From Amoeboaphelidium protococcarum X5 (lineage: Eukaryota > Fungi > Aphelidiomycota): a stretch of 64,000 bases of DNA. Under the pieces are notes generated by a model. It was given only the letters and a program-made list of their open reading frames with translations, was not told the origin of the DNA and searched no databases. The stretch lies in NCBI GenBank assembly GCA_023515725.1, contig JALDTO010000275.1, forward strand, positions 21,250 through 85,249. The letters are read 5' to 3'. Shown piece after piece: positions 4,296 through 44,425 of this stretch. The position numbers were made by a program, and so were the translations under genes. Numbering within the stretch: position 1 is the stretch's first letter; every line of letters starts with the position of its first letter.

Positions 4296-4664
4296 TTATC
4301 GCAAGGTGTATTTAGAATTATAAGAAAAGTTGTCTAAAGAGAATGAACTAAATGAAGGATGTGTTTGATTTGAACGAAATTGTATTTTTAGCCTCAATCC
4401 AATTGGATTTCTCAATGAAACGGTAACTTTCAATCATGTATGATGACAAATATGTAGTCAAAAGTTATGGAATTGAGGCGATTTTGTTGAATAACAATTT
4501 AAAGTTATTTAAACGCGTTAATAAACTCTATAACTAGTTTGAAATATAGCCAATAGTTCATCACGAATCTCGTTTGTATTCTCGTCCTCTCATGCTTCTC
4601 CCTTCACATTTCTTGCCACCTTCTTAGAACTTTAAAGCAATAATCATCTTCAATAGTCATAATA

Positions 4665-6026
4665 ATGAGTCTAAAAAACTTGGTGAATAATGTAGTTAAA
4701 ACAGTCTAAAGTGGGGATAGAATCTACATGCATTCAGTAGCCTCATTCCCGTAAATGCTCATGAATGCATTGGCGGATCGTGCCCGCTAAGAGCCAGATT
4801 TGACCAATCTAAAATTTATTCATCTGCACATTGAGGGACAGTTGCCATTTGAAGAAGATGAGCAGCTGCGAAAGTAGGGCGAGAGTGTACATCTATTCGT
4901 TGGACATGGCTCACGTAAGTATGTTAATTAAGGCGTCGGTTCGTACCTTCCCTGCTTCCTCTCTGATATTCCGATGCTGTTTCAGACTCGCACCGTACCG
5001 ATCGACTGGGCATTCCTCAATGTGTCTCCACCTGACAGGCATGGCTATTGCTCTCTTGGTCCAGAGGTTTGTGCCGCGCTCAGTGCCGCTCAAGTTGCGC
5101 GTAAAGGAGTTATAGCTCTGATAAATCCCGCGGTTCCTCGCTGCTTGGGTAATTCGTTCATTCACATGTCCTAGATTACGCATCCGGTAGATTTGCAGCA
5201 GGAATCACTGCCTCTTGCGTGTGTTGAGCATCATGAGCAAAAATCTTCTGATTATGTGCATTAGACTGGAGAAAGTAGTAAGGATGTACAGTCCGTGTAG
5301 TAGAGAATTGGATCTATACTCAGTACTCTGATACCGGACCGGGCTTGTTTGCAGGTAGGAATTGGATCTGTCCCCGATGCTGTGCTATAAGCTTTGGGTG
5401 GACATTAGGATTTGGGTCTTCACTCTGAGATGATTAGTGACGGCGTTATGCAGTTGATGCAAAAAGGTGTTATAACTAATAGGTTCAAATCTATCCAGCC
5501 GGGAAAGTCGGTAACTTCATTCATGCTAGGCAGTTAATCACTATATGATTTTGCGCATGATAATCCAGCCATACACATGGACAGCGCCGCAATGACTAAT
5601 AATCCTAGAATTATTGCATAGAACGATCGTGTCGTGGCGATTAACAGTGCTATCGAAGTTGACATTACAGGCCAGGTGTGCGCCGACAGTATTGGCAAGA
5701 AGTTCATTAGTGGCGTAGGTGGTCAGTTGGATTTTGAACGCGGTGCAGCACTATCTAACGGAGGAATGCCTGTGATATGTCTGCCATCTCTGAAAATCAC
5801 CAAACAAGGCCCCGCATCATCCATAGTGTCCACCCTTCCCGGTGGGAGCGGAGTCACAACTACGCGGTACCACTCTCACTGGATAGTGACTGAGAATGGT
5901 GCCGTGAACCTGTGGGGACTTACGATGCCAGAACGTGCACGTAAACTTATCTTTATCGCACATCAATCAGCTCAAGAGGAGCTGGCTGCTGCTGCATATG
6001 AACGGTACAAATTACTTATTAACTGA
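4665..6026 (+). CDS. Acetyl-CoA hydrolase/CoA-transferase, 4-hydroxybutyrate CoA-transferase/ASCT-1B-like (453 aa)
   Basis: Motifs VSPPDRHGYCSLG, LQVGIGSVPDAV, DLGLHSEMISDG, AINSAIEVDITGQV, ISGVGGQLDF, IVTENG in one frame under TAR=Gln. Confidence 0.92.
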
Positions 6027-6464
6027 CATTGATAATTGCGTTTCTTCAATGTTAAAATTTTACATGGACTGGTTGAATACCTGCCAAAAACACGCCTGTG
6101 ATGTTACAAATCAAATTCCACCACGTTTAGAGTCATGACGGAAGCTAAACATTTCTAACCTTACAATACTTGATAAATCAGAAAACAGTAGTGTCAATTT
6201 CAATGTGTTAAATGGAGTAATAGAAAATTTAGGAAATTGAATTATCTGCGCAAGATTAAAACCATCTGGTAAATTCTGATAGCACTATTGACTCTGTCGA
6301 GATGCCTCAATCTAACAATCAAAATGAGGTACACTTGAAATCGCAGTAGGCAACAACCTTTGCGCGCTGGAGTCTGAGTATTTTCAGTTTAGAATATAAT
6401 ACTGAATTACTAAGTATATTTCTTAGCCAGCCAATTAAGTAAAAAATTCAATTAGTATGCAAAA

Positions 6465-7757
6465 TCACTCTGCAGAGATATCAACATCACTGCGGACTGT
6501 ATAGTAGTCATTCAGATATTAAGTGAGCATTTAGCGGATGCCGTCATTTGAAGTCGCCTCAATGGCTTCCCAAACAATGGCGGGCGGGAATCGGATCAAC
6601 GAGATCAAATTCTGAACATTTGCTTACACTCCATAATAAGATTACCTTAGCAAAGCAGTATTACATTCAATACTTTCTTTAGCTCCGTGTTACTTCAGAA
6701 ATTCAAAGATGGCACTATTACCTCTTTTAGCTGCTTCTATCAAAGCACTGTCCATAGCCTACTGCGACAAACTATCCCGATAAGACTAGATCAAGTAACG
6801 AACCACTGGAAATTATTCACTGGAACCAGACGCATTAATCAAACAGGCGTCACCATGTTGATATAAGTCCAGGCCATACTAAACGAGTATTCGAAATGTC
6901 TAATAATTCGCTTACTGGGCGATCAATGGAGGTGAACATCTGTTAACATTCGCTCCATAACTTAGCAATATTCGGATTATTGGTAGATTACTAGTGTAAC
7001 TAGCTCTACGTAATGCGAACCCATTACCGGTTTCTATTGATGCACCTTGAAGCAGATACTTTTCCATATCCTTAATATTGAAGGAAATCACACTTTCTTC
7101 AAATTACCTATTCAGTTCACTCAATACATTAGCCGCATTTAAAGCACCGCTGGCATCACAGCGCGTTTAAATATCAGAAAACTCCTCTGCAAACTCCTCC
7201 TTTATTCTAATATCCAGTGACAAGATCCATTCTACAGCTTCACTATTGCAAACCATTTACTTGCGCTTCAAAGGAAATCTAAGTACCTTATAGTCAGCGC
7301 CCGGTAGTTGAATGATGGTACGTATTATCATCGCGTTAACATCTTTGCCATTGATGTCAGGCAGACCAGGACGCGTTTAAATTTACCCAAAACCAAACGC
7401 TCTATCAACAGCCAGCATTAGTTTGTAATTCAACAAATTACTTTCATAAGTCTTGCCTACTAAGGATACGATAAACGGACTCTACGCGCTTGCAATTGCA
7501 TACTCCAGCGAATAAAAACCATATCTTTGCAAATTAGGCAAATCATTCACAAGCTCACCAGCACGGACATCAGATACTTTACGTAAGAGGTGACTACTCA
7601 ATCTGGTATTGCGCAGAGTATCAGCATCTAGCCAATTGCCAATGATTTCGAAAGCATCATCAGGTAAGGATCTCGCAGCCTTAGCAGTATTGGACGTGCA
7701 AGCAATCAGAGGCAATACAACTAAAAAGCAACAGTAGCAGCTGAATATAATCCTCAT
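6465..7757 (-). CDS. Putative secreted F-box-like + ankyrin-repeat protein, copy 1 (430 aa)
   Basis: Hydrophobic N-terminus MRIIFSCYCCFLVVLPLIAC; F-box-like SLPDDAFEIIGNWLDADTLRNTRLSSHLLRKVS; ankyrin-like ALRRAS..NLPIIRILLSYGANVN and ALIEAAKRGNSAIFEFLKQHGA; TGA at 6467-6465; paralog at 28473. Confidence 0.75.
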
Positions 7758-8078
7758 TAAAGAATAAGAATCGCAGATAATGAGACCAAAATACGTCAAA
7801 TAAGAGTAAAATATAATTTGATAAAGCTGCAGGAGAAAGCGACTGAGGTATTTAAAAACTCTCACGTTTGACTCCTGAGTGATCACAACCCCTTTCGTAA
7901 ATTACTTCATGTTCTATGTACAGTATAAAAAAAATAAGATCGTGAAAATTGTTCGCAACTATAGAGGGCGGGGCTCGATTTACGTTTTCATTGTCGGCTC
8001 TTGGTTGTACTCGTAATACATTTTATTCTGCTTTAACATCAACATTGCGTCTACTTCCTATCTGTAATATTAAATTTT

Positions 8079-9632
8079 ATGGCACTGCATATCCCCTTCT
8101 TTGGCCGACTGTCAGTGTCTGATTACTAGCGACTGTTCTTCACCTGGACCTTCTTGGTGGTGAATAGTATCATCGAATTAATTCTGTCTGTAATTCCTGT
8201 TTAGCTTGGGAGTAATCTACTATCAAAGTGGTATTAGCGATTGTATAAGCACCTGTTTGGCGAAGTCAAAGACAAGGATTTTGACTCCTTTAAGGCTGCA
8301 AAGTAATAACATCCTATTGCCCTTGCTTAAAGTGTCCCAGAGTTGTGTAATTACTTTGGATATCGCTGCGACGAATTTACCACTCGTACCAGCGATGGAT
8401 TTTATCTTGTGGCGCATCGTATATTCAAGGGAGACAGACGATCTATTAGTGGTAGTCCGGTGCTATTGCAACATGGTTTCATGATGAACTCTGAAGTCTG
8501 GGTATGTCATCCTGAGCACAATCTGGCACTTGCACTTGTCGAGGCTGGTTATGATGTCTGGCTGGGAAATGTGCGCGGTAACAAATATTCATGTAAGCAT
8601 TTCCGCCTGAATACCACAGATATCAAGTATTGGGATTTCTCATTGGATGAACATGCGTTGATTGATCTACCTGCCACAGTTGATCTGGTGCTCTCTGTTA
8701 CTGGCAGATCTAGTCTGTCTTACATTGGATTCTCTCAAGGTACCACTATATGTTTTGCTGCTCTGAGTTCACTACCGTAGTTTAGAAGTAAAATCAATTT
8801 ATTCATCGCCTTGGCACCTTCGATGACTCCGCATGGATTGACAAATAAGTTTGTATAATCTGCTGCGAGATCTTCTCCAGAGTTGATCTACCTGCTGTTT
8901 GGAAGGCGTTCTCTACTTTCGTCTGCTCTTATGTACTCTTAATTATGTCCACCTGCGATGCTTAGATTCCTGGTAGATACTGCTTGCAACATTTTGTTTG
9001 CGTGGAACTTTATCTCGATGAGTAATGCCACCAAGGAGGTTGTTTATACAAAGATTTATAGCCTATGCAGTGTCAAGTTGATGGTGCATTGGTTCTAATT
9101 GATTGGTAATAGCAAATTTTAGATGTATGATGATCTTGGGGCTTCCAACATGTACAAGTAGAACACTGATAGTGGTAAAGATGGAAAGACTGGTAATTCT
9201 GCTAATGGATACAATTTGAATGGTGTCTCCGTTCCTCAATATCCCACAAAGTAGATCCAAGACGTTCCAATTGCTGTATTTTATGGTGGCATTGACTCTC
9301 TATTAAATATGCGCGGTCTATTGGAAGGTTTAAATGCTGGCAATATTCATGCTCCTGTGTACAGAGATAACACTGCCAAAAATGTTACAGTGAATGGAAA
9401 TGCTTTGAATACCGTGGATGAACAGAGTCACGTTATATTTGACTCTTCAACTGGCAAGAAATTGCTGGACAAAGATTCTCCACTTGTCTATTTGAAGTGT
9501 ATCCACCACTATGAACATTTATGCTTCCTCTGGGCTGATGATCTCGCTTAGAACGTGTCTCCAGATGTAATGAAGCTCCTAAAGAAGTACAACTAAACGT
9601 CTGATAATGTTGAAACATTGCCAGGTAATTGA
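8079..9632 (+). CDS. Acid lipase/sterol esterase, fungal Tgl1/Yeh-like (517 aa)
   Basis: Motifs TSDGFYL, PVLLQHG, GYDVWLGNVRGNKYS, YWDFSLDE, GFSQG nucleophile, YEHLCFLW; N-terminal hydrophobic segment. Confidence 0.92.
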
Positions 9633-10070
9633 AATTATTATTCGATCGATGAAAATTTTGCCTCTCCGTACTGATTGTCTATACCTTTATTCGCTTAACT
9701 TTGTGTATATTTGAGTAGAACAATACCTTTCTTATTCGATTTAAGGACAGCTCGCCAAGTGTAGATGATGATCATTTTTAAGAACGAGTTTCCTGAACCA
9801 CATTCCAACCTTTGCTTCAATTCACTCTTACACTCCGAAATGAGGCGTAAATGGGAACCATAGCAACTCAGTTTCGAGAAATAGCATTTAATGGTGGTGC
9901 AATCATGAGGATGCTTAAAAATATCTCGGCCAAATGGCTCCATTTGGGCCCCATTTGCACTCCTCAACTTTACTCCTTGAAACAACAACTCTAACTATAA
10001 TACCGCGTATATATCGCTACTAATCCAGAGTAAACTAATAATAACTTTGAAAGCTAAACCAATTACCAGT

Positions 10071-23551: not shown

Positions 23552-26500
23552 ATGGAGAATTAATTCAGTGCTATGAATAGTGGAGGTTAGAGTAGTAGTA
23601 CTGGCGATGGAAAGTCTATGAAAGCTGTGGATAAAACTGTGAATGCTAGTTTGCCTGGTGCTGGTGTTTAAAAGAGCACTGATGGTATTGAGAATGTATT
23701 CAGGAGTAGTAGTGAACCTGTGTAAAGCCGTGCCACCCCGTCTTAATAAGGGAATTAGTAGCAGTAGTAATAGTAACAGTCGTAGTCTTAGAAGTAGTAG
23801 CATTAGCAAAAGTTATAGGAATAGCCACCTTCAGGATCATCAAAGTTGAATGCTAGTGATTTTTTGGCTAATTTGAAGAGGAATGCCTTTAACAGTCCTA
23901 TAGTCTCTGCCAGTGTTGTGTAGAGTGCCGTTCAGTAGACATCGGTGTCAGCTTTTAGTTCTGTTGTGAAGTCTAGTTAGTCAACTGCATTGAAAAAGTC
24001 CTCCAGTATGAAGAGTGATCTGCCGAGGTCTGTTCCTCTTTCCTCTCCTTCACCTGCATACCATAAAGAGACAGTGACCGCATAGCTGAATATTATGAGT
24101 GAAAAGGTGGTTAGAAAGGTGTCCACAGAGTCTTTGTAGAGTGAGGAGGACACATAGCCGCATTTGAGACTGAGCAATGTACGTCCTTAGTTGTAAGAAG
24201 TTCATTAAACATCTGGAAAGTAACAGCATTATCATCATCATCTACAGCAGCGTTAGAGCGCGTCGAAGTTGGGCACTCAGTATCCTTAAATGATGCCTCC
24301 CGCTGTCACTAATCGTCCTACTTGTCCACCTAATGATTAGTCAAAGTAGCGTTTAAAGCCTATTTCTTCTGCAAATGCGGCAGACTAATCGGTAGATGTC
24401 ATAACTATTGATACTAGCTCGGATAGGAGTTCTGAGATGCTGCCGTCATTGAGTTCTATTCTATGTCCTCAGCGTCCAAGACTGCCTCCTATGGTATAGT
24501 CCAACAGTTAGGCTGCGACCAAGTAGGCAAGTACGTAGTAGTAGTAACAGTAGTAGTCATCTTCATAGCAAAGAAGATCGAATGCGGAGTTGACACGATC
24601 TGGAATAAGTGTTAGGTAGTACAGTGTACCTCAATTTGACACTTCTTTGACTTCACCTGATGTTACCTCGCCTGATGTAGTTATTCGTTAGTACAGTAAG
24701 CCTTCGTAAGAAGTATAGTCATCTTAGATTTCGGAGTCTGCATCTTCTTAGCAATAAACAGGAAGTTAGGTACGTTCGTCTCAAGCGCCAGTTTAATAAG
24801 CTCCGTCAGCTACTCCTGTTATTGAAAGTGCTGTCTAGTCTAATAATTCTCCATAGTAAAAGTATTAATAGCCGTAATCGCTTGATTCGTCTCAGGAACA
24901 GTCTTAAAGAGCAGTTCAGTAGCCGCTATAGAAGGAGTAGAATGAGCTGAATCATGGTGTGAATGTGGACAAGCCATAGAAGGATACCATGCTCTTGAAG
25001 CAATCTACTATTCCAACAGTTCAAGCTCCGATTGTTTAGGATTAGAAATCGCAGTTGATCAAGTTGAAGACTCCAAAGAAGCGCAAGCCTGCAAGTGAAC
25101 TTTTAAAAGATTTGAAAAATAGCCCGAAGAGTATTCTGAAGAGCAGTTCTAAGCGTTAGAACAAGTATAATTTGGTGGATCCGGATGGAGGTAGAACGAA
25201 GTTGTAGAAGATTGTTAGAAGATCCGCTATTGATGAGCTCTAGTAAGCTCTTCTCGGACCTGATAATACCCACTTTGATGTGGATGTTACTCTGTCTGAT
25301 TCGGATAACTCTAACTGCTTCCACTTTGCGTTGTATAGGGGCAATGCTAGAATCTTGGAATTTCTTATTGAATACTAGGAGTGCAAGAGTAGTAAGATGA
25401 TAAGCACACTTATGGACGAGATTTGGAAAACTCCATCAGTGTTGAAATCCAATCATAAATGGGATCTCGACTATAGTTTAGCCTTCAGTTTGCACCAGCG
25501 TGCATTTGGTAGCGGTGATAGTCCAATGCATGATCTCATAAACGGACTTTATGACGTAATTTGCCGAGCTGTTGAAGATACTGATAGTTTGCGTAGAGGC
25601 TTCACTTCTGATGATTTGCAATTTGAGGAGTGTTGTCGCTTAATTCTGAGCAAAGGTTATAATGTGCAACTTAAGAACAAAAATGGGCAGAATCCTGTCT
25701 AATTGATGGACTTTTATGGAGATTTGTTGAAGAAGCACAATGATTATCTCTTTCAAAATAGAACATTTGGTGCTGTGAACTAGCTGATCTCTCAGTGGAC
25801 TATGGTCTCTACGTTGTTACACAATTACCAGAGCTTGCTTAGTGGATTTACTGATGCTCCCCCACCGTCTTTGATGAATCTCTTACCTGTGTCTAGTGTG
25901 GAGAATAAGATTGAGTATTTGAATTAGATAATTCGATGTGGATTGGATCTACGGTCTGCAGACTCTGACGGCAATAATATCTTTCACATTGCGGTGGCTG
26001 CATTTGATGTGGAGCTGGTAATGTATCTGTGCTGTATATCAAATCCTATTAAAACTACTCCGATGAAGCTGTTTTCCTCTTTGTAGAGACTGCTGAAGAC
26101 TATGAGCATTGAGCCGGATAGGAATTTGTACCGTTACGACGCCAAATTGGAACTCATTTCTACCTGTAATGCAGATGGCGATTCTCCATTTCATACTCTG
26201 ATTCGTGCTGTTAATTGTGCCTCAAAAAAGTCTACCATCTCTAGCCAGTTGTAAGATAGGGTACTTTTTCTTATATAGATACTGCTAGTATTTGGACTAG
26301 ATTTTATGGTTCAGAATAGAAGGGGATAAACTGCTTTGGAGACATGCGAAGATACTCAGTTGAAATCTGTTATTGCAGACTTTTATGGCAGATACTTGGA
26401 TTCCAATGACACAGAAGGTGCTTAGAGTGAATAATTGAAGTAAGAGGAACCAGTTACTAGGCGTCAGTCGGCACAGAGAGCCGGCAAGATTGCGGCATCC

Positions 26501-28018
26501 CAGTCTTTGTCTTCTATCGCTTCGTCTAACTAAGTATCTCCGAAAGTATCCTCCTCGTCCTCTTTATAATCCGCTTCTTCAAAGGCTCCGCGTGCTAATA
26601 CCGATGATTAATCAGAGTCTATAAATGATGCACCTAAAGTGCGTGGTAAAAGGAAAAGGAGATTAGCGGCATCTTCATCAGGTGTTTCTACTGAAAATCG
26701 CAAGGATCGCGCTCGATCTATTGAATCTTCCAGTTCGGTCGCTACATCTGTAACGAATGCGTCCAGAACGAAGACTCCTACTGGTGGATTCCCTAAAGGC
26801 TTACATCCATTCTCTAAGGATGGTCATGGGAGGACAAAGTTGTAGATGAAGGCACGTGCTGGTATACTGAATGACGTGTAGAAATTGATAGAGCTGAGTG
26901 CGGATGTGAATGCTCGCGATCACGCTGGTTATACTCCACTTTCTGAAGCAGTGAACAATGGTCACTATGAAGTGGTGAAGGTTCTACTTGAGAATGGTGC
27001 TGATGTTAATAATCACGGCTTGGATGGCGAGACGGCTTTGCATGAGGCCGTAAAAAGATTGGATGTGGATATCATCAGTCTTCTTCTGCAGTATGGAGGA
27101 GATCCATTCTCAACTAATCACTAGGGGTAGATTGCTGTTGATTTTCTGAAAGTTGCTAGTCCACTGGCGCCATTGAAGAAGCACAAGGATGCAGTCGTCA
27201 ATTAAATTAGGGAGATTCTTGATTAGTACACTGAGAATTCAATCATGCCAATGACTAGGTAGAGAAAGAGACGCTTGACGGCTGAATCGAGTGATTCTGT
27301 TTTCAAGTCTTATTCGCCTTCTAAGAAACACCAGATTGTTAAAGACAAAGAGGAATCTCAAGAGAGCATGCAGAAGTCAGTCGATAAAGTTGCATCGTAG
27401 AAGAAGGCGTCTCCTGTTAAAGCGGAACCTGTTAAAGTTGAATAAAAAGATAGTGCTACTGAAGCACTTGCTGCCCTTAAAAGCATATAACCCGTTGCAG
27501 CAGTGAGCGTAAAAACTGAATTTGTTAATTCACGCAAGGATTCTGCTGCATCTTTGGCTAATTCTTCTGTTGGATCGTCTCAGAATTTGGCATTAGCGTC
27601 TCAGCAATAAGTTGCCATAGATGAGCAACTTCTTCCTTTGGTACTTTTTTCCAACCCAGAATTGTCTGGTGAACTGCTTGTAGTTGACGATTATCTGGCA
27701 AAAGTCCTTGGGTTTAATAGTACTAGCAAGATGTATCTGAAATTGGGCAAGTCTGCATTCATTCGCGATTAGCTTAGAAGTAAAAGAATTGCTGTGAGTG
27801 GCACAATGGCCTAATAACTCTTACAAATTCCCGGTAATGCTCAATGGACCAGGTATCTGGAGAGTGGTGCATAGCTTACTCAGAAATGTCATTTTATCCC
27901 CTATTCGCTGTTTTAAGATGAACTGCTGCCGTACTACGTGGAACTGACCGATATGGACCCGTTGGATGTTTCTTCAATGTTGGATGATTCTTGCATGACT
28001 GAGGTTAAATTGAATTGA
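23552..28018 (+). CDS. Large ankyrin-repeat protein with Q/S-rich N-terminus, Hos4/ANKRD11-type repeats (1488 aa)
   Basis: ORF-track fragments at 25397, 26639 and 26885 share a frame with ATG 23552 and TGA 28016. Repeats DHAGYTPLSEAVNNGHYEVVKVLLENGADVN and GETALHEA. Confidence 0.8.
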
Positions 28019-28472: not shown

Positions 28473-29789
28473 ATGAAGATTTGTTATTTATCAAGATACC
28501 TGCTCTCTTGTGCTGTCTTGCCTTTGCTTTCTTGCGCGTCAGATGTTGTCTAGGGACTAAGCGATTTAAATGCTGATGCTTTACAGAATATACTGAACAA
28601 TTTGGAAGTTTCTACTCTGCGTAATACCAGATTGAGTAGTCGCCTATTACGTAAGGTATCTGATGTCCGTGCGGGTGTGCTTGTGAATGATTCGCCTAAT
28701 CTGCAACGATATGGTTTTTATTCGCTAGAGTATGCAATTGCAAGCGAGTACAGTCCGTTTATCGTATCCTTAGTAGGCAAGACTTATGAAAATAATCTTT
28801 TGAATTACAAACTAATGCTGGCTGTTGATAGAGCGTTTGGCGTTGGGTAAATTTAAACGCGTCCTGGTCTGCCTGGCATCAACAGCAAAGATATTAACGC
28901 GTTGATAATACGTACCATCATTCATTTACCGGGCGCTGACTATAAAGTTCTTCGATTTCCATTGAAGCGCTAGTATATGCGTTGCAAAATCGACATTGTA
29001 GATTGGATCTTGTCACTGGATAATAGGCTGGCAGAGGAGTTTGCAGATGAGTTTGCAGATGAGTATGCAGATATCTAGTCGCGTTGTTCGAATGATCGTA
29101 GCGATACATCTTCACCAGCCAACATTCTAAATGAGCTGAATAGAAAATTTAAAAAAAGCATCCGTCTGCTCAATATTTCGGATATGGAGTAGTATATACT
29201 TCAAGGTGCATCCATTGATTTTGAGTAAGGGTTCGCTCTATATAGTGCAAGCTGTTTGAAAAGTAATGTGCAAATGGTCCGAGTGCTGCTTAACTATGGA
29301 GCCAATGTAAATATATGTTTACCGGCATGGGTCGCGCAGTAATGCGACTTGGAAACTTTTTAACTACATATAAAGTATGGCTTGGATTTGAATAAATATG
29401 GGGACGACCTTCTAGTAGAAGCGTCTCGTTACGTTTTTTAAATACCAGTGGTCCGCTATTTATTTGAGTCGCATCGTGATAGTTTGTCTCAATAAGGAAT
29501 GGAGCGTGCTCTGGCTAGTGCAGCCGTTTAATCTAATAGTTTGACTGTTGAGTTATTGAAGAGTTTTGGAGTTCATGAAGGTATTGAATGTTAGAATGCC
29601 TTGATTTAATAAGCTCATTAAGGGTAGGAATTGGTAGTTGCGGGTTTGCTTATATAGCTCCGTTTTCCGCTCGCCACTGTGTGGAATGCCATTCAAGTGA
29701 CTGAAGATAACGACATGCGCTAAATGCTCACTTAATACTTGAATGATCATTTTTCAGTTCGCAGTGATGTTGATATCTTGGCGGAATGA
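28473..29789 (+). CDS. Putative secreted F-box-like + ankyrin-repeat protein, copy 2 (438 aa)
   Basis: MKICYLSRYLLSCAVLPLLSCA; DLNADALQNILNNLEVSTLRNTRLSSRLLRKVS; NVQMVRVLLNYGANVN; colinear with the 6465-7757 protein through to VRSDVDIxAE-TGA. Confidence 0.75.
29037..29072 (+). repeat. Three tandem 12-nt units (GAGTTTGCAGAT-like) encoding EFAD-EFAD-EYAD
   Basis: Read directly from sequence; the paralog has only two units (EFAE-EFSD). Confidence 0.75.
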
Positions 29790-29903
29790 TTTTTAATTGA
29801 CATGGTACCTAATAAAATGGTGTCCCTATCGATTAAGTTGAATATTTTGTCACTGGATATTTTTACTTATTTATTACTTCTATAACAATCATATCGAGGC
29901 AGT

Positions 29904-31892
29904 ATGAGCGATCGCGTGCATCATGCCAGAAACTCAATCATAAGTCTATCAGACTGGTCTACGTCTAGTATTATGCGATATCTTTCAGGCACAATGAATG
30001 ATGGTGGAGATGAATATGCTGATTGTTAATGCGATGAGTAATTATAGTAGAATGATCGACAAAGAGATGCTGGGTAAACTCTAAATATAGAGCGCGTCGA
30101 TCCATCGCTTGGCATTTAATTCGCTGTGTTGGGATACTGGAATGACGTGTTGGGGCCTTCTGTTTTATGGCAATGGTAATCTAATACTGTTGATGTAATG
30201 TAATAATCACCTGGCAGCGATCGTTGCATTGACGGAGATTATTAAACTTGGATCAGGAATTTACTTCACATCGCTCTTAGTGGGTCACATCTAGAAAGTA
30301 GTAGTGGTGCTGATAATACTGCGGGCATTGATGAAGTGTAGGAGAATATCGCAACTTTGGACTAGTTATCACGCGTCAAAATAATTAAAGTTGGAGAAGA
30401 TTAGCAGGTGTTTATTTGCATCGTTTTTTATTGTTAAATGAATGTGTCTATGGATGGCTAAACATCTCTCCCATAAGCAGAGAGTAGTTCCAAGTAACTG
30501 GTAGCGCAATGTCTTTGCTTCTCTTTATTACCTTTTATCATGTCCTCCGACTATTAATAGAAACTATTTATCTAATGCGCGGAGAAGGCAGCATAATCTT
30601 TACAGTTCATGCAACGTGTCGACCCTGCTACTTTACATTCTACCGGAGATGTAGAATTATCATCGTCTTATATTCGAGCCTCATCTGATGTACTGTAATC
30701 CCTGTTTGATTAGTTATAAACCGTACAGAGATAGAAGTAGTTGGTCCAATCGCTGTAGAATAGTATAAAGTAATTGCCTAAGGCCTTCTTATGTAAGTGC
30801 TTTACTGCCGCGATGATGTATGACCGATTGCCAATAGTGATAATAATGAGCGATGACTAGACAGATGCTCAAGGTTTGGCTTTGATGATTAGCTAGTTGA
30901 CTGGTTCTTTGATTCTAAATCTCGACCCTGCTGTGTATAAGTAAGGTGTATACTATCGAATTCAGGTGACATCTCAGGTACCTGATATTTTGAGGGAACG
31001 CTAATGTGTACGAATCAATCTTTCAAAATTGTCTATTGAAGTTCCTGTGAATATTAATAAAAGTCTCGAAAGTACTGAATAGTCGAGTGTGAATTCCCTA
31101 GTGTTATAAGGGCTTACACCGAGTGACCAAGTGGGGCACCCGTTAGTTATATTTGAAGGCTTCAATGTGGTTTCTATATTGGTTGCTCTTTTGGTTGAAC
31201 GTTGTTATGGAGAAATCTTGCTTAATTGGAGTAACGTTACAGATAAATTTCAATAGCGTCTGGAGTGCAAACGCGTCATGCTAAATGAGTATTTGGATTG
31301 CCTACTTGCGTAATAGAGTACCGATTTGACTATGAAGAGCAATTTACACTCAAGTTCTGGTTATAAGGAGAATTCTATACAAAAGTATTAATAAAAATAA
31401 TAATAATTATAGTCTCGTCAATCCAATGTTCCCCAGTTTATGAAGAATCTGTGGTAAAGTGGCGATAGTCTTCAGAGATCTTAGTAGCCGGTCGATTGTG
31501 CTGATCTGATGGAGAAGCTTCAAAGTATTGTCTTTAGTTATGATACTTTAGCTCTTCAACTGCATAAGTAGAAATTAAAATCACGATAGAGTTATCATCA
31601 TACGAGCACGTTGCAGGCAAGGTAACTTCTTACCAAGACTAGTCGCGCGTCGTCACACATTGGTGGTCATCATTTAAACCTCAGTGGATATAACTCTAAC
31701 AGGACATCGCCTGTATTTGGCTAATAGAAACAAGCCAAGTTGAACTAGAGCTAGACAAATTAAGAAGTATTCGATGAAATTGTGAATGATCCTGATTTCG
31801 CTATACTGATATGTTCTGATGATAGTTCAAAAAGTGGAAGCCTTAATAAAAAGTATATCAAAGAGAAGATAAGACAGGTATTGTAAATATGA
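29904..31892 (+). CDS. C9orf72-like (longin/DENN) protein (662 aa); absent from ORF track
   Basis: 2-kb frame with no TGA seen. FAVLGYWNDVLGPSVLWQW matches the C9orf72 N-terminal pattern FAYWDNILGPRVRHIW; also RVKIIKV..FICIVF and VLQGL. Confidence 0.6.
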
Positions 31893-42859: not shown

Positions 42860-44425
42860 ATGCAGAAATCATATATAATGTTTAATCGCGGACTGTTAGC
42901 AAATTAGTTATGGCTGCTGGTCTTAGTGTTAACAAGCAGCGTATAGTCCAATGTTTATCGACATAATTACAAGTATGCGCTAAAGTAGCCGTACACATAC
43001 CAGAAGGATCACAGCATGCCGTTCTATACCGCCCATGGAAGTGCTTAGGTATCTCATGAAGTTGTGCGACTCACCAACTAGGGAATGAGCGATAACAGAG
43101 GTATGATTTGGTCTAAGCAGCCTTATAAGTTACAGGGCGAGTAATCTAGTGTTGAATATGGATTCCGCGTCAACATCTCTGTCAGTGTTGGTGGCACGGA
43201 TCAGACGGCTGGTAAAGGATTCGCTCTATTCATGACCAGTTCGCGTCCAAGTTATATTGCTGATTAAAACTTGCCTGATGGTGCGAATTTGGGTAACTTT
43301 TTTGCTGGTCATTCTCATAATGAGCCGGTCGATGGTGTAGTTGTGGTGTTCAGTTCTGTGGCTAGCGAAGGTGGTGGAAGTCGCAATATGCCGTTTGTGT
43401 ACGCTCTGGCACTTAATCAGGCTTACCTGTCTTTGCATTCGGAAGATGAACTTATCAGAAAGTACAGTCTTGGTGGATGCTACAACTAGTATAGAAATGT
43501 AGGTCAGCAGCAGAGTAAGGTGTACGTGGACTATCGGAATGATGTGTTTAGTGTTTACATTGGTGATCAAGCACAACCGTGCGTGTTCAACTCCAAAGTC
43601 TCAGAAAAGATTGATTTTAGGAAATTGTTATCCAGTGATGGTGTCTATCTGGGTCTTGGTGCATCTACTATGCCAGTTTCGGGTGATCAACATGACCTGC
43701 ACTCTATTGACGTCTTCGATTTTTTTGAGCCTATTGTGGATGCTGAACCGGTGGATCATCACAAGAAACATGTCTTGACTGAGGATGATAATAGGCTCTT
43801 TGATGAAATTCATCACAAGATTGAGAATCTCAGACATCATCAAGATGGTGACGCTGTGCATTCTTCATAGACAACAGATCAACCGATTGGTATAGGATCA
43901 GCATCTATGGAGAAGTTGGTGAACAGCGTACGCGAAGTTGAATTCCGTATTCTGAACAAGTTGGATGACGTTCTCACTAGGCTGAATGTTGGTAATGGTG
44001 ATGGTTCACAGTAGCCTATTGCTGGTGCAGGAAGTGGCGATGGCGGTCTGTCTACTAAAGTTGACCATCTTGAGTAGATGACCAGCCAGGTGTTGAGTCT
44101 GTTGCAACAAATGGCCAATTACTTGACCCACTAATAGAATGAAGCAGGAGGTGGCGCGTAATCAAAGGAAGACTTGCGCCAGTTGTAGAATCAACTCCAT
44201 TAACTTCACTCCACCGTCTCAGATTCCAAGCAGAAGATGGATCAAGTACATTAGTAGATCAATGATCCGCTGCACAGACGCCACTGGTTCAATGAATCAA
44301 GCTTCTGGTACGGTTTGGCACTGTTCATCATTGCCCAACTGGTCCTCACTTTTATGTATGGAAGGTTTATGCGTGGCCCAGTGGAACAGAACAAGAAATT
44401 TCTGTAAGCTAATCCATTCATCTGA
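42860..44425 (+). CDS. L-type lectin cargo receptor, ERGIC-53/Emp47-like (521 aa; alternative start 42878)
   Basis: Signal peptide, YKYALKQPY, VRLT..RGMIWSK, GKGFALF, YLGLGAST..DQHD, coiled-coil, C-terminal TM followed by KKFL. Confidence 0.85.

Follow-up and report, generated by a model that had tools for sequence, protein, structure and literature searches.

Signal-peptide F-box-ankyrin proteins of Amoeboaphelidium protococcarum as candidate effectors directed at the SCF ligases of the algal host

Two genes in a 64,000-nucleotide stretch of the Amoeboaphelidium protococcarum X5 genome (the window), here called A and B, encode proteins which are best explained as a species-restricted pair consisting of an ER-type signal sequence, a divergent F-box, a helical linker and an ankyrin solenoid (Table 1). 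They are well-founded effector candidates and not demonstrated effectors. The earlier note on this DNA had read them as an effector family of an algal parasitoid that hijacks the SCF ligases of the host, and we regard secreted SCF-hijacking effectors as a possible but tentative reading. To our knowledge, next to nothing has been established about the molecular means by which aphelids, the sister lineage of fungi and a pest in mass cultures of algae, overpower their hosts. The sole dual RNA-seq study of the infection, from 2021, names candidate effectors by similarity to bacterial entries alone (PMC8657485). A signal-peptide F-box-ankyrin protein is a concrete and cheaply testable hypothesis on aphelid infection. 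If true, no other aphelid effector would have been defined mechanistically before this pair, and SCF mimicry, found in bacteria, poxviruses and one insect, would also occur in a protist related to fungi, with ordinary ER secretion as the route.

Table 1. Features of genes A and B, with positions in the window
Feature	Position	Strand	Basis or remarks
Gene A coding sequence	6465..7757	-	430 aa, terminated by TGA at 6465-6467; one exon with 21 in-frame TAA/TAG read as Gln; product identical to P0001
Transcript-like extent of gene A	6435..7816	-	~30 nt past the stop, 47-59 nt before the ATG
Signal-peptide-like leader of A, residues 1-22	7692..7757	-	M-R, 18 apolar residues, C-T-S, then polar stretch
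Divergent F-box-like segment of A, residues 28-75	7533..7676	-	Genome F-box profile, Skp1 docking; without Pfam hit
F-box motif of A as quoted earlier, residues 31-61	7575-7667	-	
Near-identical tract of A and B, codons 46-166 of A	7260..7622	-	dS 0.195 vs 0.9-1.5 elsewhere
All-helical middle region of A, residues 76-227	7077..7532	-	AF2 pLDDT below 50-60
Ankyrin-repeat solenoid of A, residues 228-418	6504..7076	-	Pfam, AF2, Foldseek; about six helix pairs
Gene B coding sequence	28473..29789	+	438 aa + TGA; equals P0129
Signal-peptide-like leader of B, residues 1-23	28473..28541	+	M-K, apolar core, C-A-S, then Asp
F-box-like segment of B, residues 29-76	28557..28700	+	PF00646 21.4 bits, model positions 1-36
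C-terminal ankyrin-repeat region of B	29178..29750	+	Pfam Ank 21.3 bits on piece 29229-29339; alignment with A

The coordinates, strands and genetic code (table 6) of both genes had been given correctly before. Both open reading frames are intact and intron-less if TAA and TAG are read as Gln, with 20–21 such codons in frame per gene and TGA terminating both, and their products are 61% identical. The previous assignment of the DNA to an algal parasitoid with a UAR = Gln code is supported. The aligned contigs contained no joints in gene A, showing that it consists of a single exon. P0003 (NCBI MP228_009017), the orthologue of B, is 97% identical to the gene B product. The proposed order of leader, F-box-like segment and ankyrin repeats was confirmed in both genes, weakly for the F-box and solidly for the ankyrin part. 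An open reading frame at 29790-31892, which follows in frame after the TGA of gene B, was rejected as coding (56 TAA/TAG in 700 codons, noise-like content).

The C-terminal ankyrin repeats are solid. Among the models of the ankyrin Pfam clan (including PF12796 and PF00023), A matched Ank_2 with 38.0 bits (cut-off 27.3), Ank with 29.0 (21.1), Ank_4 with 25.3 (22.7) and Ank_3 with 22.8 (22.3), and P0003 reached 24.7 bits with Ank_2. In the stop-free pieces of A a single ankyrin repeat was detected by Pfam; the further repeats were scored on full-length P0001. AF2 predicted residues ~220-420 of A with a pLDDT of 80-95, and Foldseek with the C-terminal half returned DARPins and ankyrins as top matches with a probability of 1.00 (e.g. 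4o60, TMt 0.64-0.66). The middle region of A possibly consists of degenerate ankyrin-like repeats: those of the 2138-aa protein P0002 were matched in seven stretches by residues 24-81 of a 98-aa piece of B, which correspond to about residues 50-107 in A.

For residues ~28-65, four tests point to an F-box beyond chance, each of them weak and all of them concordant: Pfam on B, hhalign, ESM neighbours and Skp1 docking. The F-box reading of residues about 29-65 in the earlier note is thereby retained as a prediction. With the PF00646 cut-off of 20.5 bits, the segment scored alone reached 21.4 bits in the B piece and 21.7 bits in P0003 (residues 25-110), while in full-length context P0003 scored 18.8 bits, under the cut-off; the site in B has a genome-wide E of 0.004. 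An hhalign profile built from 12 F-boxes that Pfam detects in this genome aligned with residues ~26-62 over 37 columns in register (score 16.5-17.1, P 0.003-0.004), and all other windows of the protein gave P >= 0.058. The ESM feature neighbours of B residues 25-76 were F-box clusters throughout, with a top score of 0.90. The segment has the 40-50-residue layout of an F-box, with the L-P, spaced hydrophobics and three helices ahead of a repeat domain; in A the helices were predicted by AF2 with low confidence at residues 33-42, 45-50 and 55-65, and in B the L-P is replaced by L-N. A search with PF12937 detected neither A nor B, and a comparison of the segment profile with PDB sequences gave only a chance match to a metallo-beta-lactamase-fold protein (E 0.71). 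The AF2 model of full-length A, from an alignment of three sequences, had a pLDDT below 50 for residues 1-141 and yielded no usable F-box model, and the N-terminal 111 residues of P0003 had a mean pLDDT of 37. Since the N-terminal ~140 residues do not reach a pLDDT of 50 whether folded alone or as part of the whole protein, the F-box was not confirmed at the level of the fold.

It might also be possible that the proteins are secreted or ER-luminal ankyrin proteins with no SCF function, whose "F-box" would be a degenerate remnant or simply cap a long ankyrin-like solenoid at its N-terminus. The leader would then work, and any action would be plain binding via the ankyrin repeats, as in the secreted ankyrin effectors of plasmodiophorids (PMC12503489). 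Full-length A has no match to the Pfam F-box at E <= 10, the ESM neighbours of its residues 25-125 are ankyrin clusters, and A and B differ most strongly in the first half of the F-box motif (dN 0.63); these observations and the match of B to P0002 are in line with such a protein. However, the four tests, which are independent, favour an F-box here and at no other place along the protein, and Pfam ankyrin models leave residues 25-110 of A unmatched. Moreover, the motif lies in the canonical place before the repeats, as it does in two F-box-ankyrin genes of the same genome that have no leader (G000:C249:77.3-79.0 kb and G000:C244:322.2-323.1 kb, each with a second copy). These genes share the domain order, since their F-box lies in the first ~20 residues and ankyrin repeats follow, and differ from A and B in their clear Pfam scores for F-box and Ank_2 and in the missing hydrophobic leader; the order F-box then ankyrin is thus native to this genome. 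We consider an ankyrin protein of this kind unlikely.

The predicted F-box segment appears compatible with Skp1, namely with the aphelid's own Skp1 (P0005), as weakly shown by modelling. The predicted complex scored 0.59, 0.58 and 0.59, compared with 0.02 for the best control, which falls into the band of weak support: of 78 solved complexes 51 reached the docking mark, as did 2 of 108 mismatches, and scores of 0.60 or below comprised only 5 solved complexes plus all 4 mismatches that passed. The runs agreed in at least 73% of the contacts, with a partner pLDDT of 57. The score may stem from known Skp1-F-box complexes that the model has memorized.

By inspection, the leaders of A and B would be classical signal peptides with n-, h- and c-regions. 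Both start with Met and a basic residue, followed by 14-18 apolar residues and a small-x-small site, which is the Sec-type layout of a basic n-region, an apolar h-region and small residues at -3/-1 as far as inspection and hydropathy can tell. The signal-peptide-like start reported previously was thus found again by these two means. The 10-residue Kyte-Doolittle maxima of 3.05 and 2.51 are within the top four of the 28 long open reading frames of the window. Hydrophobicity of the leader is kept in B, P0125 and P0003 while its sequence diverges (dN/dS ~1), in copies with a synonymous divergence near 1 elsewhere, and among the 44 Pfam-detected F-box loci of the genome, B is the only one with a Met-initiated hydrophobic leader directly upstream. 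A mitochondrial presequence was rejected by inspection, the N-terminus being an unbroken apolar stretch and not amphipathic and basic.

The earlier note had argued that a signal peptide is pointless on an F-box protein unless the protein reaches another cell, which overlooks N-terminal membrane anchoring. A and B might be endogenous SCF receptors of the aphelid with the Cys-rich hydrophobic N-terminus as an uncleaved anchor, possibly S-acylated, in the ER, the phagosome or another organelle, so that the domains face the aphelid cytosol and its own Skp1. The apolar core of A, with 18 residues and four Cys, exceeds the 7-15 residues of the h-region of a cleavable Sec-type signal peptide and suits such an anchor, as do the Skp1 used in the docking and the presence of F-box-ankyrin receptors in the genome. 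Moderate purifying selection and a small family would fit a housekeeping regulator. The core of B, on the other hand, comprises ~14 apolar residues after Arg8 and is followed by three acidic and no basic residues. According to the positive-inside rule, the textbook basis for reading topology, this acidic flank places the N-terminus inside and the remainder across the membrane, with the C-terminal part outside the cytosol. The small-x-small site directly after the core in both copies also argues against an anchor, and the absence of homologues from other aphelids and fungi would be unusual for a core regulator. Parasite genes for ubiquitin-mediated proteolysis and for the phagosome rise together during infection (PMC8657485), which again favours an endogenous role. 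Overall we judge a membrane-anchored receptor to be rather improbable; A and B would even then have an unusual F-box topology.

Gene A appears to be expressed. None of the three outcomes that the earlier note had named as refuting was thus observed. In three runs that carry the label of another organism (X9, X10 and X12), contigs cover gene bodies only, including 6435-7816, and the intergenic DNA at 6056-6423 is bare, whereas it is covered in the DNA run X1. The RNA nature of the three runs was read from the coverage pattern alone, and their coverage would fit RNA prepared from infected cultures. B-like variant contigs occur in the RNA-like runs as well. The contigs end at 7804-7816 and no ATG lies between these ends and 7757, which backs the start codon of A at 7757. 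A longer version of gene A, a 541-aa open reading frame from an ATG at 8090, was rejected because the RNA-like contigs end at 7816; in addition, a TGA lies 20 codons before the Met of B, and the upstream stretches share no similarity. At the P0004 locus, a first exon consisting of the start codon only was sought, and no ATG was found within about 480 nt upstream. A soluble cytosolic ankyrin protein, with the hydrophobic N-terminus left unused owing to another start or as a non-functional extension, is very improbable: two loci of strain MP228 are indeed annotated from the internal Met114 as 317-aa proteins lacking leader and F-box, but these models can be traced to a deletion that shifts the frame and to the loss of a start codon and not to a different gene structure, the first ATG lies inside the RNA-like contigs with none upstream, and four full-length copies have kept both the leader and the F-box segment in frame.

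For the secreted SCF-hijacking effector, the following course can be envisaged. The trophont is brought inside the algal cell, where it engulfs the cytoplasm (PMC6299283). The leader would route the protein into the secretory pathway of this wall-less trophont feeding inside the algal cell, and the exported protein would reach the algal cytoplasm; a protein secreted by the trophont may end up either in the algal cytosol or in the food vacuole. The F-box would then dock on the SCF ligase of the alga through its Skp1, which is highly conserved, and the ankyrin solenoid, the diverged part of the two copies, would recruit algal targets for ubiquitination. ER entry, leader cleavage, export, access to the host cytosol and any host target are inferred only. 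That aphelids export F-box receptor mimics via the trophont secretory pathway and thereby reprogram the SCF ligases of green algae is a somewhat doubtful extension.

Similar architectures occur in other parasites. Legionella pneumophila AnkB carries an N-terminal F-box and ankyrin repeats and recruits host Skp1/SCF. Poxvirus ANK/PRANC proteins, from a parasite of eukaryotic cells, combine ankyrin repeats with an F-box-like Skp1-binding motif. In PRANC proteins this motif is C-terminal, after the repeats, whereas the motif of A precedes them; A thus lacks the PRANC arrangement. Being synthesized in the cytosol of the host, these poxvirus proteins carry no signal peptide. The GALA/RipG proteins of Ralstonia likewise recruit host Skp1/SCF with an N-terminal F-box and a repeat domain (LRR in RipG) (PMC4617103). 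Bacteria deliver AnkB and GALA/RipG through type IV or type III secretion systems, whereas the leader of A and B is of the eukaryotic ER type, and no sequence relationship of A and B to AnkB or GALA/RipG was detected. The SSGP-71 proteins of the Hessian fly (Mayetiola destructor) have a classical signal peptide, an N-terminal F-box and a repeat domain, bind host Skp and are proposed to act as mimics of the host's own F-box proteins (PMC4617103). They form a very large, fast-diversifying family with LRR repeats and shown binding of host Skp, whereas A and B are two ankyrin genes under purifying selection with a predicted Skp1 docking. Plasmodiophorids are, like aphelids, intracellular protist parasites of photosynthetic hosts with predicted secreted ankyrin proteins (e.g. 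PbANK1); of the more than 40 members, 17 have a SKP1/BTB/POZ domain linked to ubiquitination (PMC12503489). Their family is expanded and the linked domain is Skp1/BTB/POZ-like and not an F-box, and no homology of A and B to these effectors was found.

When this genome was searched with the F-box profile A2, the piece of B and P0004, nothing besides A and B came up, so the family proposed earlier is a pair in this assembly. An expanded or fast-evolving effector family is not supported. Homologues were not found in other aphelids or fungi, and the N-terminal piece of B retrieved only its own cluster and P0002 from 1.84 billion representatives. Such a lineage restriction is typical of effectors. 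Family expansion and diversifying selection, which are frequent and non-obligatory effector traits, were not seen. In strain MP228 two of four loci are degraded, an A-type copy with a 25-nt deletion inside the F-box and a copy at the B position that has lost its start codon, suggesting that the gene family is partly dispensable in that strain. Outside the leader, dN/dS is 0.31-0.39, showing that both genes are under purifying selection and giving no sign of an arms race or of diversifying selection. In codons 46-166 of A the low dS coincides with a low dN, which indicates a gene-conversion tract, and the assembly graphs of DNA and RNA-like runs alike break in this tract.

In the window, TGA-only ORFs of up to 1,500-1,700 codons carry 80-100 in-frame TAA/TAG codons, thus the UAR=Gln code is genuine here, in agreement with the reassignment known for Amoeboaphelidium protococcarum (PMC5304391). 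Under the standard or bacterial code gene A is interrupted by 21 TAA/TAG codons; with TAA and TAG read as Gln it forms a single ORF of 430 amino acids ending in TGA, and gene B one of 438 amino acids. The translations are exactly identical to the products P0001 (A) and P0129 (B), which share 61% identity over their full length. A TGA is located 20 codons 5' of the first Met of gene B; the frame of gene A is open upstream to an ATG at 8090, and this extra stretch is without counterpart in B.

The ankyrin-like repeats described in the earlier note were confirmed, and their prediction in A is solid. Full-length A scored in Pfam with Ank_2 (38.0 bits, cut-off 27.3), Ank (29.0), Ank_4 (25.3) and Ank_3 (22.8), AF2 modelled residues ~220-420 as about six helix pairs at pLDDT 80-95, and Foldseek against the PDB retrieved DARPins and ankyrins with probability 1.00 (e.g. 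4o60, TMt 0.64-0.66). An Ank_2 match of 58.9 bits is also located at 26852-27112, within a large gene with low-complexity regions and no leader just upstream of gene B (23552-28018, plus strand); no relation of this gene to A or B was detected.

The segment in front of the repeats is on balance probably a genuine, Skp1-competent F-box, with evidence that is weak overall but concordant. Gene A gave no Pfam F-box match even at E <= 10, whereas the segment of B and its orthologue, scored alone, reached 21.4-21.7 bits for PF00646 (cut-off 20.5), falling to 18.8 bits within the full-length protein; PF12937 found neither A nor B. In the genome-wide PF00646 scan the B site had an E of 0.004, and the other entries were ordinary F-box genes. 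AF2 gave the N-terminal 140 residues a pLDDT <50 in both jobs, and a profile of the segment found no F-box protein among solved structures. The ESM neighbours of A 25-125 were ankyrin clusters, and residues 24-81 of a 98-residue piece of B (~50-107 of A) are similar, too, to the ankyrin-like repeat unit of P0002, a protein of 2138 amino acids. These results would also fit a secreted ankyrin protein in which the N-terminal motif has lost its engagement of Skp1, but this is rather unlikely in view of the observations that favour the F-box. A profile of 12 Pfam-positive F-boxes from the same genome, slid with hhalign along the alignment of four full-length members, scored only windows over residues ~26-62 (16.5-17.1, P 0.003-0.004), with 37 aligned columns and L-P aligned to L-P; all remaining windows had P >= 0.058. 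The family-named language-model neighbours of B 25-76 alone were all F-box clusters (top 0.90, a lead only), and the position directly N-terminal to the repeat domain is canonical. In ESMFold docking on the aphelid's own Skp1 (P0005), A 24-112 scored 0.59/0.58/0.59, which lies in a weak band, against 0.02 for the best control, with at least 73% contact agreement between runs and a partner pLDDT of 57 (33-38 in controls). Of 78 solved complexes 51 attained the docking mark, as did 2 of 108 mismatched pairs, and scores <=0.60 comprised just five solved complexes, yet all four mismatches that passed. The predicted complex, obtained for A and aphelid Skp1 only, lends weak support to Skp1 binding, and a familiar complex type may score because the model has learnt it. 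Two distinct Skp1 paralogues are present in the aphelid, each as a pair of copies, and the docking used the first. Two further genes of the genome encode an F-box followed by ankyrin repeats; both score clearly in Pfam, lack a hydrophobic leader and have a second copy on C98.

Both proteins begin with Met and a basic residue, followed in A by 18 uncharged, mostly apolar residues and in B by ~14 after Arg8; the leaders have a V-L-P-L core in common and end with C-T-S or C-A-S, after which a polar stretch begins. Their ten-residue Kyte-Doolittle maxima are 3.05 (A) and 2.51 (B), and just two others among the 28 long ORFs in the window exceed 2.5. The long ORF at 42860-44425(+) also has a signal-peptide-like N-terminus, with an apolar run after a basic start and a maximum of 2.55. 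Between A and B, dN/dS of the leader codons is near 1 and hydrophobicity is retained, and such conservation of hydrophobicity during sequence drift is typical of signal peptides. A plain cytosolic protein is very improbable. By inspection and hydropathy the signal-peptide-like N-terminus of the earlier note holds, but cleavage and anchoring are both possible from sequence, above all in A. An endogenous receptor held at the membrane by an uncleaved N-terminal anchor is rather unlikely, to the same degree as the secreted ankyrin protein without Skp1 engagement. Three acidic residues and no basic residue come after the core of B, which by the positive-inside rule would favour translocation of the remaining protein. 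Of 44 F-box loci that Pfam detects in the genome, B alone is directly preceded by a hydrophobic leader that starts with Met, so that leader plus F-box is exceptional and not a general habit of the genome's recognisable F-box genes; in the L030/L032 pair a hydrophobic stretch, probably UTR, is located 66 residues upstream. Just after the leader of A, residues 29-33 (R-S-L-P-D, window 7659-7673) fit the Plasmodium PEXEL pattern RxLx[EQD]. This match shares its L-P with the F-box, is conserved in the intact A-type protein P0125 of strain MP228, is absent from B and is probably a coincidence.

The best single reading, held tentatively, is the SCF-hijacking effector proposed in the earlier note; the A/B pair counts as a candidate effector only. 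From its cyst the aphelid delivers an amoeboid trophont with no wall into the algal cell, and the trophont engulfs the cytoplasm there (PMC6299283), thus an ordinarily secreted protein could come into contact with algal cytoplasm with no need for a dedicated translocon. On this reading the protein would exit the trophont through the normal secretory pathway, its divergent F-box would dock on algal Skp1 and the ankyrin solenoid would select targets. Skp1 is a strongly conserved protein: the aphelid sequence shares 59-70% identity with the fungal, other opisthokont, amoebozoan and plant Skp1 compared. AnkB and the poxvirus ANK/PRANC proteins, the latter with the reverse domain order, are among the functionally nearest cases. 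Functionally near A and B are also Hessian-fly SSGP-71, with signal peptide, F-box and LRR and binding host Skp, bacterial GALA/RipG (both PMC4617103) and plasmodiophorid secreted ankyrin effectors, some with a SKP1/BTB/POZ domain (PMC12503489). No literature linking aphelids with F-box effectors was found in the library searched.

An effector family, as had been claimed, is not what the genome-wide count returned, which is two genes: searches of the 23.6-Mb assembly (window at C273:21250-85249) found no members beyond A and B. A comparison with 1.84 billion representatives and 5.8 billion clustered proteins gave relatives from A. protococcarum only, and NCBI names the closest relatives of A and B, as well as the genome's Skp1, as being from this species. 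In strain MP228 (GCA_023515745.1) four loci are spread over two syntenic regions, and each region has one intact and one degraded copy, thus one intact gene of each type was retained. The degraded copy P0004 is annotated from Met114, with leader and F-box stretch still in frame and the ATG lost; P0127 is frameshifted by a 25-nt deletion within the F-box. The P0004 locus is a chimera with a B-like leader and an A-like F-box start.

Across most of the gene the A/B comparison gives a dS of 0.9-1.5, and dN/dS outside the leader is 0.31-0.39, indicating from these rates that both genes are old, functional and under purifying selection; no arms-race signature was found in dN/dS. Over codons 46-166 dS is 0.195, which identifies a tract of gene conversion between the paralogues, and DNA and RNA-like assemblies both break at the tract edges. 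Most of the assembly's F-box, ankyrin and Skp1 loci come as two nearly identical copies on separate contigs, as a duplicated or hybrid genome would show; the A/B region is without a second copy in its own assembly.

Coordinates of the A/B genes, their copies in strain MP228 and related loci
Feature	Location	Strand	Remarks
Gene A	window 6465-7757	minus	P0001
Gene B	window 28473-29789	plus	P0129
Gene-conversion tract	gene A 7260-7622, gene B 28608-28970		codons 46-166
MP228 region	1.41-Mb contig		intact A-type P0125, B-position copy P0004
MP228 region	2.83-Mb contig		intact B-type P0003, A-position copy P0127
MP228 stretches	L022:2560-3010 and L015:3380-4000
F-box-ankyrin gene	G000:C249:77348-79012		L020 ORF 1349-3013
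F-box-ankyrin gene	G000:C244:322259-323143	minus	L021 ORF 1259-2143
Skp1 paralogue 1	G000:C57:299016-299486 / C249
Skp1 paralogue 2	G000:C205:216152-216616 / C245

Contigs from public runs were placed on window 4400-9900. The DNA run X1 covers all of it; in runs X9, X10 and X12 coverage is confined to gene bodies (4615-5952, 6435-7816 and 7956-9735), with depth zero at 6056-6423. These three runs are filed under another organism label, their kind is not on record and their RNA status is taken from this coverage pattern, which is the one expected from RNA, thus gene A looks transcribed. Its 5' end would then be located 47-59 nt upstream of ATG 7757 with no ATG in between, and no joints, hence no introns, were seen in gene A in the placed contigs. 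Short variant contigs with 12-13 differences across 7452-7641 represent the B paralogue, therefore gene B seems to be transcribed as well. The contigs give no ranking of expression level or stage. The three runs could derive from the 2021 dual RNA-seq study on infection of Graesiella emersonii by A. protococcarum, a study that mentions neither F-box nor ankyrin (PMC8657485).

The genes next to gene A, at 4615-5952 and 7956-9512, show 1.2-1.9% divergence from the window in the RNA-like runs (25-26 of ~1320 and 15-17 of ~1400 letters); for gene A it is just 1-2 letters per ~950-1020. This may reflect different subgenomes, a recent sweep or introgression. A 2013 biofilm metagenome contains 84% of the words of the gene A stretch, and freshwater and wastewater metagenomes contain small shares (runs X5, X13 and X15), which suggests that A. 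protococcarum or close strains live in these habitats.
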